A DNA stretch of 64,000 bases. Origin: Octopus sinensis (lineage: Eukaryota). Of this stretch, positions 4,681-62,340 are shown piece after piece. The stretch lies in contig NC_043013.1 of assembly GCF_006345805.1 (NCBI RefSeq), positions 13,144,001 through 13,208,000 of the forward strand, given 5' to 3'. Position numbers and translations under genes: made by a program. Within the stretch, counting starts at the first letter, position 1. Each line of letters begins with the position of its first letter. Under the pieces are notes generated by a model. The model saw nothing but the letters and a program-made list of their open reading frames with translations. It did not search any database and was not told the origin of the DNA.

Positions 4681-4861
4681 TTTGTTCGTGTGGATCACCA
4701 AACCTCCATGGATATTATAATTAATTTGATAATATATCAATGGAATTTCTCATTGCCAAACTTACTTATTTCTGTGATTGGGGGAAGAGAAGACGTCCAG
4801 TTGAATGAACCTACTAAAGAAGCTCTTGGGCATAGTTTAGTTAAAGCTGCAAGAGCAACAG
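4681..4861 (+). CDS. TRPM: TRPM-like channel, MHR1/2 (SLOG) exon, module 1 (exon A)
   Basis: tttttacatatag|FVRVDHQTSMDIIINLIIYQWNFSLPNLLISVIGGREDVQLNEPTKEALGHSLVKAARAT-G|gtaaaa; matches TRPM YxRVS...W.L..P.LLISV.GG; phase 0 to 1. Confidence 0.92.
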
Positions 4862-4978
4862 GTAAAAAGGTTTTAGCACACTTATTGTGAATACTACTAC
4901 TACTACTACTACTACTACTAATAATAATAATAATAATAACAATAATAATAATAATAATAATAATAATAATAATAATAA

Positions 4979-5175
4979 TTCTAACCGGGCCCCCACCTGC
5001 AAGATCATGCATTGTTTATCTTGATATGAGATCACCATGTCACGGACATACGGTTGTGATGCATGTGTCTGGTGTATCTTATCAGACGAGTAGTCATGAT
5101 GGGTATACTGGCTTCGTATATTTTACCTCAGTGTCACTTTGATAGCATGCACTGCTCTCTCACTCAATAATAATA
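4979..5175 (+). mobile_element. SINE-like interspersed repeat, 3' part ending in (AAT)n
   Basis: CTAACCGGGCCCCCACCTGCAAGATCATG...CTCTCACTCAATAATAAT; shares sequence with 6900-7012. Confidence 0.7.
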
Positions 5176-6664
5176 ATGATGATGATGAAGCGGCTGGACG
5201 TATTCTTCGCTGCACTGAGCTGTCAGCAGCTGAAGACACAGAAACACTAATACAACCCAGCAGGACAACTGAAAAATAACTCTAAAAGACTGGAATATCT
5301 AAAGTTTCATGCGAGTATTTTGAATTTCCCTGAAAATAAGTTAAGGGACTTACATATCTAAAGCTTTCGAATACATAAGCAATCAGCTTTAAAACCTTTA
5401 ATATCTACAACTTCTGTGAATACCTACCATTTCCTCCTGAGTATTCGAAAATGTAAACATCCTCTTTATTCCAAGAACACTACAGTTTTCTCTGTTCGGA
5501 CAGACAAAAGATCATCTCCAGTAAATTTTTTAAATTTCAAATCTTTAATTTTCTGTGAAAAAGTTTTACCTTCCTTTTCTTTCCGTTCCTTTTTCCCTGA
5601 ATATTCAAAAATGTAACCATACTTTTAATGAAGAAAAAAAACACTACAGTTTTCTCTGAACGGACATACAAACGAACACCTCAGAAAATTTAGAAACGTT
5701 AATATCTCCAGTTTTGTGCGAACATTTTGTCTTTCCTTCTTCCCTGACTAACAGAATATGTAAACATGCCTTTTATAGTAACAACACAATTAAATGCAAG
5801 ATAAAAAATTAAGTAAGTAAGCACCTGCCAATATATACATACTGCACAACTACAAAAACTGTAAACCACAGCAAAACTTTTTAAAAGAAAATAAAAATTC
5901 CAAAAGAAAAAGAAAAAGAAATTCGGAAATTAAAAAATCCAACAAGGTGAACATCTCTTCCTCCTACTATTCCCAAAGACTGGAATATCTACAATTTCCT
6001 GTGAATATTTTAAATCTTCCTCAAAATAAAATAAGCTAGGAAACTTACCTACAGCTTTCAAACACACAAACGATCAGCTTTAAAAAAAGACTTTAATATC
6101 TACAACTACTGTGTGAATACCTATCCTCCACACCATCTGCCAAATCTATTTATACACCTGTAGAATATGATCTATTCACTAAAATGCTACCCTATTATTT
6201 CCTCCAACAATGATATATTTATGATTATATCAAGTACAAGACAAAAGTTGAAAATAAAGAACGTTTAGTAAAATCTTTTAATAATAAATGGAAATAGTAA
6301 TAATGAGAATAACAATGGTAGTGGTGGTGATGTTGATAATGATAAAAATAAAAATTATAATAATATGCTGCAGCTACTAATACTAAATACTACTAACACT
6401 ACAATGATACTACAACTACTACTATTATGATAGCACAGGACTCTGAAACCCAACTACCAAACTTACCAGAACCCCACCCCTGCTGCTGTTGCTGCAACCA
6501 CTGCTGCTACTACACATAAAAACAATAATAACTGTGATATCAGTGATGATGATAATAATAATAATAATAATAATAATAATAATAATAATAATTATCATGT
6601 ACATTGTTTTGTCTGGGTATAAAAGATGGGCTACAGCAAATATTCTGCTCAATACCACAAATTT

Positions 6665-7012
6665 GCTTGTCAGTTGTTTGACCTTAACCAGTTGAGCATG
6701 TCCCTTAGTGGCTGACGATATGTGTATCTCTGATCACGAGCAGAAGTAGTGGGGGAGCATCATAGCCATGTGTTGAGAGGGATTGTTTGGGGTTTGAATA
6801 GTTCACCTCTGGAAACATGGGTGGTTCTTTCAACATCCTTAAACAACCCTTATTCAGGGACCGTTTGAGCGGGATGGGTTACTCGAGCAGAAGAAAATTC
6901 TAACTGGGCCCCACCTGCAAGGTCATGTGCTGTTTATCTTGATATGAGATCACCATGTCGCGCACATATGGTTGTGATGCATGTGCCTAGTGTACCCTTA
7001 TCAGACGGGTAG
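6665..7012 (+). mobile_element. Same SINE-like family, 5' and middle part
   Basis: Overlapping segment CTAACTGGGCCCCACCTGCAAGGTCATG...CAGACGGGTAG shared with 4979-5175. Confidence 0.7.
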
Positions 7013-8201
7013 ATGACCATTTCTTTTGATTCTTGAACAACACAATTTCCAAGTAACAATAATCAAACCCAATCAAATTTATCAGTATCCTGGAATAATA
7101 TGGTTGTGAGTTTGTTGATTTCATTTTGCAATTATGCATTTTTCGGTTCCGTCCCAATTTGTAACACCTTGGGTAACTGTCTTTGATTATACCTATGGGA
7201 TAACCAAAGATTTGTGATTGAGATTGGCAGACCTCATCCATCACTCAGCTTGGTATGTCAGTCTGTTCCTTTTCTGACTGAAATAAAAATTCGGATCTAT
7301 ACCTTACACTCTCTATGATGTATGAGGCAGAGGATGTTTAGGATCGATCCCTCAAGAATTGCACAAATCTGAGTATTCCTAACACACTATCTGTCACTAG
7401 CACCAATCACTCTGTGAGTACTTAAAGTTATTGGCTACATCCTTCTTGCTTGAGTCCTTCCTCCTCAGGGCCACCTCTCCTCAACTAACACGGCTGGGAA
7501 GGAAATTCTCTCAGTATTCTCAGATCCATGCTGAGATATATCTTATTCCATACTTGCATAGGAGTTATCTACAAAAATACTAGCAGCTGAATCTATTTTA
7601 TTTGTAATTCCAAAGGATTTATCTCTTCTTCGTAATAATAATTCATTTTGACTTGTTATCAAGGTTTTCTAGCTTAGCTGTTTGTTGCTGTTGAAACCGA
7701 GGTCAAGCTTAATTCAATAGACCTATGTTCAAAATCATTCCAGCAATGACCATCTCATTTTATCTCCAGTTATCAATATAGAATAAAATATGCTGGGTGC
7801 TGATGACTAAATCTGAAAAAGGCTGAATAAGCATATTGTTGTATTTAGGTTTTTCTTTCTTTCAGTTATGAGTTCAAATTCTGCTTGGGTTGTATTTTTG
7901 TTTTACATGTTTTGTCAAGGACTGATTAGAAAATCGATAATTGAGTTCTAGATTGATTCAGTATATCATATCCTTACTTCCATAATGAGGAATATATCAA
8001 TGATTAGATTAACCCCAGTTAATGACTGGTGCATATTTCATCAAGCTTACACGGACAAAGAGAAAATTCAGCCTTTTCGTGTGAAGCCTGAATGTGACGG
8101 AATATAACAAAATGCCATAGGGTATTTTGTCCAAAAACATACAGTAGTTTTAGAATAGGAAATCAATATTTGAATATAATTATTGATCTCTTGTTTTGCA
8201 G

Positions 8202-8365
8202 ATGCCTGGATCATAAGTGAAGGTTTACATAGTGGAGTTGTGAAATATATTGGGGAAGCTATATCTGATAATGAAAATAAAGTGGCTGACATGAAAAAAG
8301 TGAAAACCATTGGTATTGCACGGTGGGACTGTGTACAAAACAAAGAATCCCTAGTGAATAAGGAG
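8202..8365 (+). CDS. TRPM: TRPM-like exon B
   Basis: ttgttttgcag|(D)AWIISEGLHSGVVKYIGEAISDNENKVADMKKVKTIGIARWDCVQNKESLVNKE|gtaaat; TRPM AWI.TGG...GV.K.VG and IGIA.WG motifs; phase 1 to 0. Confidence 0.93.
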
Positions 8366-60676: not shown

Positions 60677-60752
60677 AATGCATACCTCGGTTTCGGTCTT
60701 AACAAAAGAATTACTTGCATAATTCAAGTGTCCGTGACTTCTTCAGTACATT
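60677..60752 (-). ncRNA. Hammerhead ribozyme-like motif, left arm
   Basis: aatgta-CTGAAGA-agtc..gacc-GAAAC-cgag-GTA-tgcatt. Confidence 0.55.
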
Positions 60753-60992
60753 CGGTCCTCGAGATGCAAACTGCAAGACTAACCCCAGCTCTCTGTGTCA
60801 AGACAGACACGTGCTTAGTCTTACTGATTACATCGGGAATAAAATTTCAAATGTCTTGGTTCCGGCGCGCTAAGAGACTCCTGAAGCGAAGGGCTGCAGT
60901 GAATAATTCACTGCGGGTAAAGCTTACTGCTAGGGAACGTATTTATTTAAATATTTAAAAATTGAGGGAGATAAATTAATTCTCGAGGACCG

Positions 60993-61068
60993 AATGTACT
61001 GAAGAAGTCACGGACACTTGAATTATGCAAGTAATTCTTTTGTTAAGACCGAAACCGAGGTATGCGTT
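60993..61068 (+). ncRNA. Hammerhead ribozyme-like motif, right arm
   Basis: aatgta-CTGAAGA-agtc..gacc-GAAAC-cgag-GTA-tgcgtt; A10.1-C11.1 mismatch. Confidence 0.55.
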
Positions 61069-61601
61069 TAAGTCTGTTTTTTATTTAATTTTTCATATCT
61101 CCTGCCCGCCAAATTTGGTTCTGGTGTTCGCTGAATTCTTCCTCTAGAGAATTTCCCTTGTAGTTTGATCGTTTATGATCTATTTCTAGCATTCTGGCCG
61201 GCTACCTAGCAGGCCAGCCCTGCCAATATACACATATATTTGAATTTTCTCTGACTCCTCAGATTTTTTGAATGCTGGACTACTGGTTTTAAATTGATAT
61301 TAAAATTAATATTAATTATCTCCCTCAATTTATATATATATATATATATATATATATATATATATATATATATATACTTAATCATATCGAAGGGAAATGG
61401 AAATTGATAGAAATTTTCACTTCCAGCGGTTTAGCGTGTAAAAATTTAGTCCAAAGACTATGTACTACTCATAAAATATAGTGTACATTTAAACACATAA
61501 GAAATCCACCCGTGGGATTCAACACACTAGAAAGAACAGCTAGGTTCCATAACCACAAAATTAGGGATAAAATTCGACTGGAACAAAATGAAAAAATAAA
61601 A

Positions 61602-61767
61602 ACTTTTACCATCTAGTTTCCTGGACCAATTGGTTTCTGATTTGCCTCATGTTTCATATATTTAATCTAAGGTGTACCTGTTGAAGAAGATTTCACCTAG
61701 CGAATATTATTTATTTGCTAAACTAAAATCAGAAACCAACCAGACCAGGAAACTAGATGGTAAAAGT
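61602..61767. repeat. 42 bp inverted repeat with a decayed hammerhead motif
   Basis: 61602-61643 versus 61726-61767; plus strand cctg-TTGAAGA-agattt..aaatca-GAAAC-caacca-GAC-cagg; other arm GAAAC-caattg-GTC-cagg. Confidence 0.7.
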
Positions 61768-62255
61768 GTGTGTATCAATGATATCCAGGTAGGGTTACAA
61801 GTGACTAACTAGCTCTTAGACGCAGAGGCTATTTTAGTAGTGGTAGAAAAGGCAAAGAGAAGACACAGCACATTGGTGTATATTGGTGACTTCATGCCAG
61901 TCAATTGAGTAACCTTTTTCTGGATGTTGCCTTATGATACCTGTATGTGTAGCAGAAGCACCATCCCAGATGTAGAATCACTATTCGACTGTGTACCCCA
62001 TTTTCTTCATTTACTTCTGACGGTAAAATAACTTCTTGTATTCCTTTCAGTTTATTTAAAATTAATCATTATTTTATTTAACTAAATTAAAAAATGTTTA
62101 CTTCCATGAATGGATTTATGTATCTACATCTGTGGATCTTTGTATCTTTCATTGGAGTTGTTCTTTCTCTCTTGATATTGTTATTTTCCTTTTTCTACCT
62201 TCCCCATCACAACTTTATTTCAGTTGTTCATTTGGTTTCTGTTTATCTTTGATAG

Positions 62256-62340
62256 AAACGCTACAGATAAAGAGCCATCAAAACCCTGTGATGCATTTGG
62301 TGAGGTAAAGTTTCCAGAAGATGGTTGGAATATTGCAAAG
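62256..62340 (+). CDS. TRPM: TRPM N-terminal exon with the PxDAFG motif, module 2
   Basis: tttatctttgatag|(R)NATDKEPSKPCDAFGEVKFPEDGWNIAK|gtaatt; matches TRPM PTDAFG.I.F...KYVR; ends in phase 0, as needed for an exon-A-like FVRV exon. Confidence 0.8.

Follow-up and report, generated by a model that had tools for sequence, protein, structure and literature searches.

Tandem array of channel-less TRPM SLOG cassettes in the genome of Octopus sinensis

The window, that is the whole 64,000-nucleotide stretch of the Octopus sinensis genome analysed here (contig NC_043013.1, positions 13,144,001 to 13,208,000), is one period, of about 61 kb, of a tandem array which arose as an octopus TRPM-beta (TRPM2-like) channel gene underwent repeated partial duplications of its 5′ part. 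Nine exons make up the ancestral cassette, namely a 38-nt exon encoding W..NIKLR, an 85-nt exon encoding PCDAFG, exons A to F (868 nt) and the first MHR3 exon (95 nt), in total 1086 nt or 362 codons. Since this cassette is both entered and left in phase 0, head-to-tail splicing of adjacent cassettes can preserve the reading frame. The MHR3/4 body, transmembrane domain and TRP box are absent from the cassette. These tandem channel-less cassettes are probably expressed, or were until recently, as soluble proteins with one to several SLOG domains, of which LOC115221041 would, judging from the gene models, be an example.

The MHR1/2 module

Exons were compared with a TRPM HMM of 1158 positions, which was built from 79 full-length TRPMs and run on six-frame segments of at least 12 aa. 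Those of the window module are as follows.

4681-4861, + strand: exon A, FVRVDHQTSMD...KAARAT; phase 0 in, phase 1 out; AG/GT; HMM positions 98-158, E 1.9e-19
8202-8365, + strand: exon B, DAWIISEGLHSGVVKYIG...SLVNKE; HMM positions 158-220, E 8e-22
12584-12743, + strand: exon C, GLWPANYSNGGEYALDPNHTHFILVDDGT...; bounded by AG/GT
16888-16991, + strand: exon D, KVKIPAVAVMVGEELETLKSAFDSLSRNIPVIIVK; bounded by AG/GT, HMM match
19801-19886, + strand: exon E, GSGKAADIMADVYEALLKKDEEGKDITE; bounded by AG/GT, HMM match
21429-21601, + strand: exon F, the end of MHR2, ...DFDVAIMKAVFK; phase 1 out; HMM positions 333-397, E 4.5e-08

Spliced together, the six exons amount to 868 nt and give an open frame of 289 aa which is left in phase 1; all are bordered by AG...GT, so that each of their 12 splice sites has the canonical form. 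The product matches Pfam LSDAT_euk ("SLOG in TRPM") over profile positions 3-263 of 266 [E 2.4e-58] and, much more weakly, LSDAT_prok [4.8e-23]. Its full length aligns with residues 111-415 of Nematostella TRPM2 (6CO7), the MHR1/2 region [1.2e-45]. Splice borders, Pfam match and alignment thus agree with an earlier note on this DNA, in which these exons were read as about 289 aa of MHR1/2. Exon A is identical (60/60 aa) to residues 855-914 of O. sinensis XP_036366207.1, and exon C (53/53 aa) to residues 589-641 of the O. vulgaris model P0020. Read through its donor, exon F specifies GKK and then a stop.

The restart of the next cassette

Two further exons, which normally lie upstream of exon A, were found near the 3′ end of the window.

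59595-59632, + strand: first exon of the next cassette, DIKKWMQKNIKLR; 38 nt; AG/GT; phase 0 in, phase 2 out
62256-62340, + strand: second exon of the next cassette, NATDKEPSKPCDAFGEVKFPEDGWNIAK; 85 nt; AG/GT; phase 0 out, to exon A′

The Met codon at 59610-59612 is the modelled start of the RefSeq O. sinensis protein P0001, whose first 36 residues are identical to the two exons read from that Met. Exon 62256 matches the inter-module linker of P0019 [tblastn, 5e-08], and the flanks of exon 59595 are homologous to spacer 31754-32292 of L003, a sister copy of the array unit. Exon A′ lies about 3.4 kb beyond exon 62256 on contig L001. The AG/GT borders, the identity with P0001 and the tblastn match all confirm the restart of a TRPM N-terminus that had been proposed here.

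Search for channel exons and the linker-exon relic

On both strands of the window the full-length TRPM HMM matched exons A-F (positions 98-397) and, weakly, exon 62256; every other match had E ≥2, and none extended past position 400. No MHR3/MHR4 (PF25508), transmembrane, Ion_trans pore or TRP box exon was therefore recovered in the window by this HMM. As a positive control, the same HMM recovers MHR3/4 exons at the octopus locus L002 (best E 1.9e-24), and even the first-MHR3 exon, short as it is, is picked up at both L002 (E 0.004) and L003 (E 0.007). The profile check of 21.6-59.6 kb, in which no exon between MHR3 and TRP was seen, accordingly bears out the earlier note's statement as far as the channel body is concerned. 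What the note overlooked is a relic of the first MHR3 exon, which serves as the linker between cassettes.

30565-30595, + strand: linker-exon relic; 31 nt left of the 95-nt first MHR3 exon, about 64 nt deleted
30579-30595, + strand: candidate 17-nt micro-exon inside the relic; ACGGAACTCAGTGGCAA between tttcag and gtaaga, giving DGTQWQ

The acceptor region, donor and downstream intron of the relic are collinear with those of the intact exon at L002 58476-58570 and L003 25175-25267, although the relic, unlike the intact exon at these loci, gives no TRPM HMM match. Because the linker exon has decayed in the window unit, there are three possible outcomes for the frame after exon F. Splicing of F straight to 59595 would yield GYKEMDAEKHKIE, KRYR and a stop within exon 62256; read-through at the exon F donor would append GKK before the stop; and the putative micro-exon, if used, may rescue the frame and hold exon F in register with exon 59595.

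The relic also bears on whether the window contains parts of two separate SLOG-only genes, the first ending after exon F (by polyadenylation or at the GKK stop) and the second beginning at the Met in 59595. This we regard as unlikely. Exon F is left in phase 1 whereas exon 59595 is entered in phase 0, the exon that bridged them is now a relic, and the P0001 model does begin within exon 59595; but P0001 lies on a 52.5-kb contig and is truncated by its end, so its boundaries weigh little. Furthermore, four models, drawn from two species, join exon A in frame to the cassette before it, and hence the first gene comprises more than a single SLOG.

The spacer and the assembly

21602-59594, no strand: inflated inter-cassette spacer; 38 kb, versus about 12 kb from exon F to the equivalent exon in L003

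Islands collinear with L003 are found at 21601-22100, 30637-30796 and 58607-59749, the remainder being composed of (TA)n arrays, a SINE-like minisatellite and dispersed repeats. Tandem repeats make up 17% of the spacer. Tandem repeats and stretches with matches at non-syntenic positions together account for at least 52%, a lower bound because only about 250 kb of comparison DNA was available; the description of this DNA as mostly repetitive is upheld.

That the restart is an assembly chimera or false duplication seems very improbable. The gap includes two (TA)n arrays, one of 2.3 kb and one of 1.8 kb, which are difficult to assemble, and 22.1-30.6 kb and 30.8-40.2 kb are without independent sequence coverage. 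Nevertheless the spacer is collinear with its sister spacer within the gap and on both sides of it, an independent contig shares 98.9% identity with the comparable 49.6-64 kb and continues into the next cassette, and the module order is the same in O. vulgaris. As the two modules share only 69% protein identity, they are not a collapsed or duplicated pile of reads.

Public gene models over the array

In RefSeq and ENA models from three octopus species, three to four SLOG domains are chained without a channel. LOC115221041 of O. sinensis (RefSeq) spans 248 kb and specifies 1272 aa with three SLOGs, window exon A supplying residues 855-914. P0019, P0020 and P0021 each contain three to four LSDAT_euk domains, and a domain search of the three revealed neither PF25508 nor Ion_trans; P0020 and P0021 have no hydrophobic segments and P0019 a single weak one. 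P0019 includes window exon A. P0020 shares 96% identity with exons A-F over its residues 474-762, after which comes the ortholog of the next cassette, and the same order of window module and next module recurs on an independent O. sinensis contig. An adjoining gene model, of 1423 aa, has at least four SLOG domains. In L003, which is 96-98% identical to the window unit, the preceding cassette is joined in frame via the linker exon; RefSeq isoforms P0173 and P0174 at this locus join D, E, F, linker, W exon, PCDAFG exon and exon A.

The order in P0020 and on the O. sinensis contig supports the tandem paralog foreseen in the earlier note, but not the free-standing first gene that was to precede it, the module being an internal cassette of a larger array. 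The note's other suggestion, one channel carrying tandem MHR1/2 modules, finds no support in the window. MHR3/4 and Ion_trans are missing from the models of both O. sinensis and O. vulgaris. At the far 3′ end of the array such a channel is possible, as isoforms X1-X3 of O. bimaculoides XP_052830018 start in exon F.

These isoforms raise the question of whether the array extends the 5′ end of a TRPM-beta gene lying downstream, which would then specify a channel subunit with several N-terminal SLOGs. We give this little credence. Encoded by a 404-kb gene, X1-X3 open with cassette exon F, followed by the linker and by an acidic tail to which the C-terminus of P0019 is homologous, and run on into SLOG, MHR3/4 and about three hydrophobic helices; the same 5′ exons occur at the O. 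vulgaris ortholog locus, L002. Against this, XP_052830018 holds a single cassette fragment and no whole extra SLOGs, its model ends at HMM position 810, short of the pore, a stop follows the acidic tail in the O. sinensis model, and in-frame continuation of the window cassette depends on the putative micro-exon.

The public models are themselves in conflict. In P0019 window exon A is followed by exon B from a different cassette, and P0020 mis-frames exon 59595 and omits exon 62256; the RefSeq and ENA annotation over the array thus consists of mosaics which skip or mis-frame exons. Protein searches yielded only genome-derived models.

Phylogeny, selection and ligand site

In a neighbour-joining tree the octopus modules form one clade (bootstrap 100), in which the cassettes cluster with the channel-type gene XP_052830018/L002 (bootstrap 89). 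XP_052830018 was assigned to TRPM-beta in a 2026 study (PMC13143021). The module clade includes three O. bimaculoides TRPM-beta proteins from Table S1 of that study, an indirect test of membership because the tree is without TRPS and TRPM-alpha sequences. The first 87 residues of an O. bimaculoides TRPM-beta entry in the same table (PMC13143021, Table S1) correspond to a cassette end.

Between cassettes dN/dS is 0.65-0.78, in no case clearly below 1 (rough z 1.4-1.9). Relative to the 98% identical L003, the window exons are no better conserved than the introns, with four nonsynonymous changes to one synonymous, and exon A of L003 carries a 1-bp frameshift. The four contacts of human TRPM2 with ADP-ribose that we compared, M215, Y295, R302 and R358 (M191, Y271, R278 and R334 in zebrafish; PMC13060097), are not conserved in the window module, which has V, S, K and K; the corresponding residues of other cassettes are A or E; L, F, P or S; R; and P, G, R or Q.

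One might suggest from this that the cassettes are decaying partial duplicates, perhaps transcribed and taken up into automated gene models, but without a functional protein. Such an explanation would accommodate the high dN/dS, the neutral-looking substitutions and frameshift in the youngest sister copy, the loss of the linker exon from the window unit, the mutually inconsistent gene models and the altered ligand contacts. We nevertheless think it rather improbable. If substitutions were neutral and had accumulated to half the synonymous divergence observed, with indels ignored, a 289-codon frame would stay free of stops in about 0.8% of cases (P about 0.008). Every splice site is canonical, the O. 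vulgaris module is intact at 96% identity, and the core motifs LDPNH(S/T)HFILVDDGT and SRNIPV(V/I)IVK are nearly invariant across cassettes. Intact frames and motifs could instead reflect gene conversion from a functional copy.

The Rossmann-like fold of TRPM SLOG domains has the glycine-rich loops ISVTGG and ITGGT.xGVM. The first is kept in the window as ISVIGG, while the second reads IISEGLHSGVV, a change common to the full-length octopus channels.

Possible products and significance

We favour expression of the cassettes as soluble channel-less proteins. More tentatively, an array of about a dozen nine-exon units might specify soluble multi-SLOG proteins which serve in the cytosol as sensors or buffers of nucleotides, or as TRPM-beta decoys. 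By analogy, a nucleotide-binding or decoy module of this type would most likely buffer its ligand or associate with full-length TRPM-beta, and its ligand specificity would presumably not be that for ADP-ribose. Human MHR1/2 alone binds ADP-ribose with a Kd of about 0.5 uM (PMC13060097), and in PDB 7AOV the isolated MHR1/2 is a stable, soluble ligand-binding unit.

The TRPM family is thought to have originated by fusion of a soluble SLOG domain to a TRP pore. The octopus locus is the reverse of this, the SLOG part having been detached again and amplified, and would if confirmed be an instance, in an animal, of the release and multiplication of the ligand-binding domain of a channel. The chained multi-SLOG proteins of the public gene models are not known to have been described before. 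Should the products be real, they would offer a natural system for what MHR1/2 binds and does without the channel, and a natural test of TRPM channel regulation like that by engineered or spliced short forms.

Comparison with known systems

The closest full-length relatives are the octopus TRPM-beta channels XP_014781149, XP_014774531 and XP_052830018 (O. bimaculoides) and L002 (O. vulgaris), which share 53-67% protein identity with exons A-E and about 41-45% with exon F. They have the same exon boundaries, lie on the same chromosome and share with the window IS(E/D/A/T)GLH in place of ITGGT(N/H). While they go on to PF25508 MHR3/4 and Ion_trans, the window unit halts at the MHR2/MHR3 border and restarts.

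Like the cassettes, TRPM2-S is a TRPM N-terminal part without a pore. It arises by alternative splicing and retains the whole N-terminus, with one MHR1/2, and two transmembrane segments, whereas the cassettes are separate genomic duplicates consisting of MHR1/2 only and chained. TRPM2-S co-assembles with and inhibits full-length TRPM2 (PMC7600390), and so provides a precedent for a regulatory role of pore-less TRPM N-terminal products. Isolated MHR1/2 of zebrafish TRPM2 (7AOV) and human TRPM2 (residues 53-446) has the domain boundaries seen in the window; these are engineered fragments which fold and bind ADP-ribose alone, but their contact residues differ from those of the window.

Multi-SLOG models with more than one LSDAT_euk each also occur in Crassostrea gigas (XP_019919132), the jellyfish Sanderia and a 2355-aa 'UNVERIFIED_CONTAM' Acipenser entry. 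In these, MHR3/4 is retained between the SLOGs or after them, in some cases with Ion_trans, and the models look like fused tandem whole genes, in contrast to the octopus models, which repeat SLOG alone. The SLOG superfamily was reportedly treated by Burroughs et al. in 2015. Its prokaryotic stand-alone members (LSDAT_prok) are also channel-free; the octopus cassettes, unlike these, have been freed secondarily from an animal TRPM and keep its exon structure and a relic MHR3 exon.

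The SLOG module and the restart exons

The window is AT-rich animal DNA without Ns. Its SLOG (MHR1/2) module consists of six open segments, exons A–F, each bounded by AG/GT, and two further exons open the next module:

4681–4861, + strand, exon A
8202–8365, + strand, exon B
12584–12743, + strand, exon C
16888–16991, + strand, exon D
19801–19886, + strand, exon E
21429–21601, + strand, exon F, leaving in phase 1
59595–59632, AG/GT-bounded, first restart exon, encoding DIKKWMQKNIKLR
62256–62340, AG/GT-bounded, second restart exon, encoding NATDKEPSKPCDAFGEVKFPEDGWNIAK

These exons had been read in the same way in the earlier note, and our rederivation found both its coordinates and its readings to be correct. 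Spliced together, exons A–F give 868 nt and a 289-aa frame, which is in phase 1 at the exit of exon F. Pfam LSDAT_euk ("SLOG in TRPM") is matched by the product nearly end to end (E 2.4e-58), and over its full length the product aligns with MHR1/2 of the TRPM2 structure 6CO7 (residues 111–415, E 1.2e-45) and with the stand-alone MHR1/2 domain of zebrafish (7AOV, E 8e-43). For the predicted fold of the module these sequence matches to solved TRPM2 are decisive. In TRPMs the sequence encoded by the restart exons lies upstream of exon A. Candidate cassette-specific or junction peptides are AVFKDGTQWQDIKK and the linker AVFK(A/V)KNNIENMR.

Search for channel exons

A profile of 79 full-length TRPMs (1158 positions) was run against all six-frame segments of at least 12 aa. 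It recovered exons A–F (positions 98–397) and, weakly, the 62256 exon; no other match better than E = 2 was present on either strand of the window. In the control, a channel-type locus of O. vulgaris (L002), this profile recovered exons covering positions 402–697 within 28 kb past exon F (best E 1.9e-24), and the short first MHR3 exon was picked up both there and in the sister copy L003 (E 0.004 and 0.007). Overlooked downstream exons were rejected as an explanation, since full-length channels from octopus and bivalves gave chance-level matches only in tblastn at E 1e-3 and again in a relaxed search (word size 2, E 20). Profile and tblastn agree in finding no channel exons past MHR2 in the window; the earlier note had seen none between the two modules.

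Octopus proteins of 250 and 254 aa were rejected as proof of SLOG-only genes: P0001, a short O. sinensis RefSeq protein, is cut by the end of its contig. P0002 was likewise discarded as a SLOG-only gene, being a fragment of one which extends into MHR3/4.

Independent copies

Residues 855–914 of the O. sinensis protein P0019 (XP_036366207.1) are identical to exon A (60/60), and the N-terminus of P0001 is identical to the restart exons. The contig of P0001 (L001) is 98.9% identical to window positions 49601–64000 and runs on into exons A'–D' of the next module. The module order is repeated in a second cephalopod: O. vulgaris CAI9735606.1 (P0020) carries an ortholog of exons A–F (277/289 identical) and, after it, one of the L001 module, each grouping with its O. 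sinensis counterpart at a bootstrap value of 100. Because the layout is shared by both species and is seen again on a separate contig, the restart is not an assembly artefact, a possibility raised in the earlier note.

The repeat unit and its spacer

L003 (O. sinensis chromosome CM016875.1) is 96–98% identical to window positions 1–9100. Upstream of exon A it contains, in order, exons D, E and F of the preceding module, a linker exon, the W..NIKLR exon and the PCDAFG exon. The linker, of 95 nt (AKNNIENMRLGLAWNKPDVLKRLISEREAPWE), is the first MHR3 exon. RefSeq isoforms P0173 and P0174 splice precisely the D, E, F, linker, W..NIKLR, PCDAFG and A exons of L003. From this exon order and these junctions we derive a cassette of nine exons, of 38 + 85 + 868 + 95 = 1086 nt (362 codons), entered and left in phase 0, such that cassettes can be joined head to tail in frame.

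The 38-kb gap in the window is an inflated version of the L003 spacer. Collinear stretches lie at 21601–22100, 30637–30796, 58607–59749 and 61767–62400, and tandem and dispersed repeats make up at least 52% of the gap. Of the linker exon 31 nt persist where expected (30565–30595), the acceptor region and a GTAAGA donor still being recognisable. A direct splice from exon F to 59595 leaves the reading out of frame (GYKEMDAEKHKIE) and meets a stop at 62268–62270, while read-through of the exon F donor adds GKK and then a stop. Judged from the sequence, a putative 17-nt micro-exon (30579–30595) after TTTCAG would bring the reading back into frame (…AVFK-DGTQWQ-DIKKWMQKNIKLR…).

Within the gap, (TA)n arrays at 23481–25778 (2.3 kb) and 27504–29340 (1.8 kb) flank a 1.7-kb block whose minus-strand ORFs (26281–26523 and 27203–27514) look reverse transcriptase-like by eye, with no Pfam match. 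A Pfam scan of repeat-region ORFs within the gap found nothing, transposon domains being confined to intronic ORFs outside it, which are transposon remnants by their domain matches:

10468–10977, + strand, Pif1 2B domain (Helitron-type helicase), cassette intron, E 5e-15
17258–17701, − strand, mariner-type Transposase_1, cassette intron, E 4e-13
18669–19061, − strand, zf-RVT, cassette intron, E 5e-06

At 53128–53680 a sequence resembling tRNA-Gln(TTG) (66 bits, Rfam tRNA) stands immediately ahead of a 61/122-bp minisatellite. Relatives occur at about 13530–13910 and 50693–50855 and in L001, L002 and L003, and the element looks like a tRNA-derived SINE family dispersed across these loci. A young dispersed repeat at 6592–7012 (94–95% identity to L002 73679–74098 and L003 22086–22505) is an insertion relative to L003.

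Public gene models

P0019, a protein of 1272 aa whose gene extends over 248 kb, contains three LSDAT_euk domains and neither an MHR3/4 nor an Ion_trans domain. The O. vulgaris models P0020 (989 aa) and P0021 (677 aa) are of similar build, and four or more SLOGs occur in a neighbouring 1423-aa model of O. sinensis. We tallied roughly a dozen distinct O. sinensis modules in these data. The third SLOG of P0019 (residues 855–1160) is a mosaic of the window cassette's exon A and exons B–F of a different cassette, its exons B and C being only 84–86% identical to the next cassette on L001 and exon D less so; the model must thus pass over one and a half cassettes or more. In P0020 exon 59595 is read in the wrong frame and exon 62256 is left out. 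The public models are mosaics, showing annotators' evidence connecting cassettes and not true mRNAs.

On the minus strand of L003, positions 4423–4485 and 677–754 hold exons like the P0020 N-terminal region (KKWIEENIKLR; FRQNHPYVKIKMPPTPSQYLDTIINQ), which fits the annotated 1423-aa multi-SLOG gene lying antiparallel to the array. A 2355-aa entry filed under Acipenser sinensis and flagged UNVERIFIED_CONTAM (P0022, MGH0117658.1) has about seven stretches of SLOG and nine of MHR3/4 (PF25508) without a pore domain; it may be a further tandem array of TRPM N-terminal parts.

Origin of the cassettes

The octopus modules form a single clade (bootstrap 100), and the cassettes cluster with XP_052830018/L002 (bootstrap 89), where the gene continues into MHR3/4. 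Table S1 of PMC13143021, a study which moved some "TRPM-like 2" entries of octopus to TRPS, gives XP_052830018 and the two further O. bimaculoides relatives as TRPM-beta. For these nearest relatives a TRPS origin was rejected on that classification.

Isoforms X1–X3 of XP_052830018, a 404-kb gene, start with exon F of a cassette, then a linker and an acidic tail with homology to the P0019 C-terminus, and only after these comes the channel gene's own N-terminus. This places the array upstream of a TRPM-beta gene, into which transcription may read through. In XP_052830018.1 (P0165), which serves as a TRPM-beta channel in the published phylogeny (PMC13143021), residues 1–255 begin with the end of a SLOG cassette, a linker and an acidic tail, and the model breaks off near the third transmembrane helix. 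Partial tandem duplication in a TRPM-beta gene has copied a phase-symmetric block of exons, yielding channel-less SLOG cassettes, which would be expressed as soluble single-SLOG or multi-SLOG proteins.

Functional or decaying

In favour of function we count the canonical splice sites of exons A–F (12/12), the intact O. vulgaris copy, core motifs near-invariant across cassettes, and a neutral simulation at half the observed synonymous divergence, which left 289 codons without a stop with a chance of about 0.8%. Against it stand a between-cassette dN/dS of 0.65–0.78, loss of the linker exon in the window's cassette, and replacement of the TRPM2 ADP-ribose contacts M215, Y295, R302 and R358 (PMC13060097) by V, S, K and K. 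Between the window and L003, moreover, exons are no better conserved than introns (98.5% vs about 98% identity), with four nonsynonymous changes, one synonymous change and a frameshift in L003 exon A. The last is a 1-bp deletion (CATTGCC to CATGCC) in the copy at 42538–42717, where P0173 and P0174 end, and could be either real decay or an assembly indel.

Protein-database searches, including a junction-spanning query, returned genome-derived models and no transcript-derived sequences, an absence which proves little since they also omitted P0019 and P0020 (96–100% identical to parts of the query). Full-text literature searches yielded work on TRPM evolution and surveys of cephalopod TRPs, and in none of it were SLOG-only or multi-SLOG proteins described; the proteins are known solely as "uncharacterized" or "hypothetical" database entries.

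By analogy only, the cassettes might bind nucleotides with altered specificity or associate with full-length channels. MHR1/2 can fold and bind its ligand when separated from the channel, and TRPM2-S, the short form of TRPM2, inhibits TRPM2 (PMC7600390).
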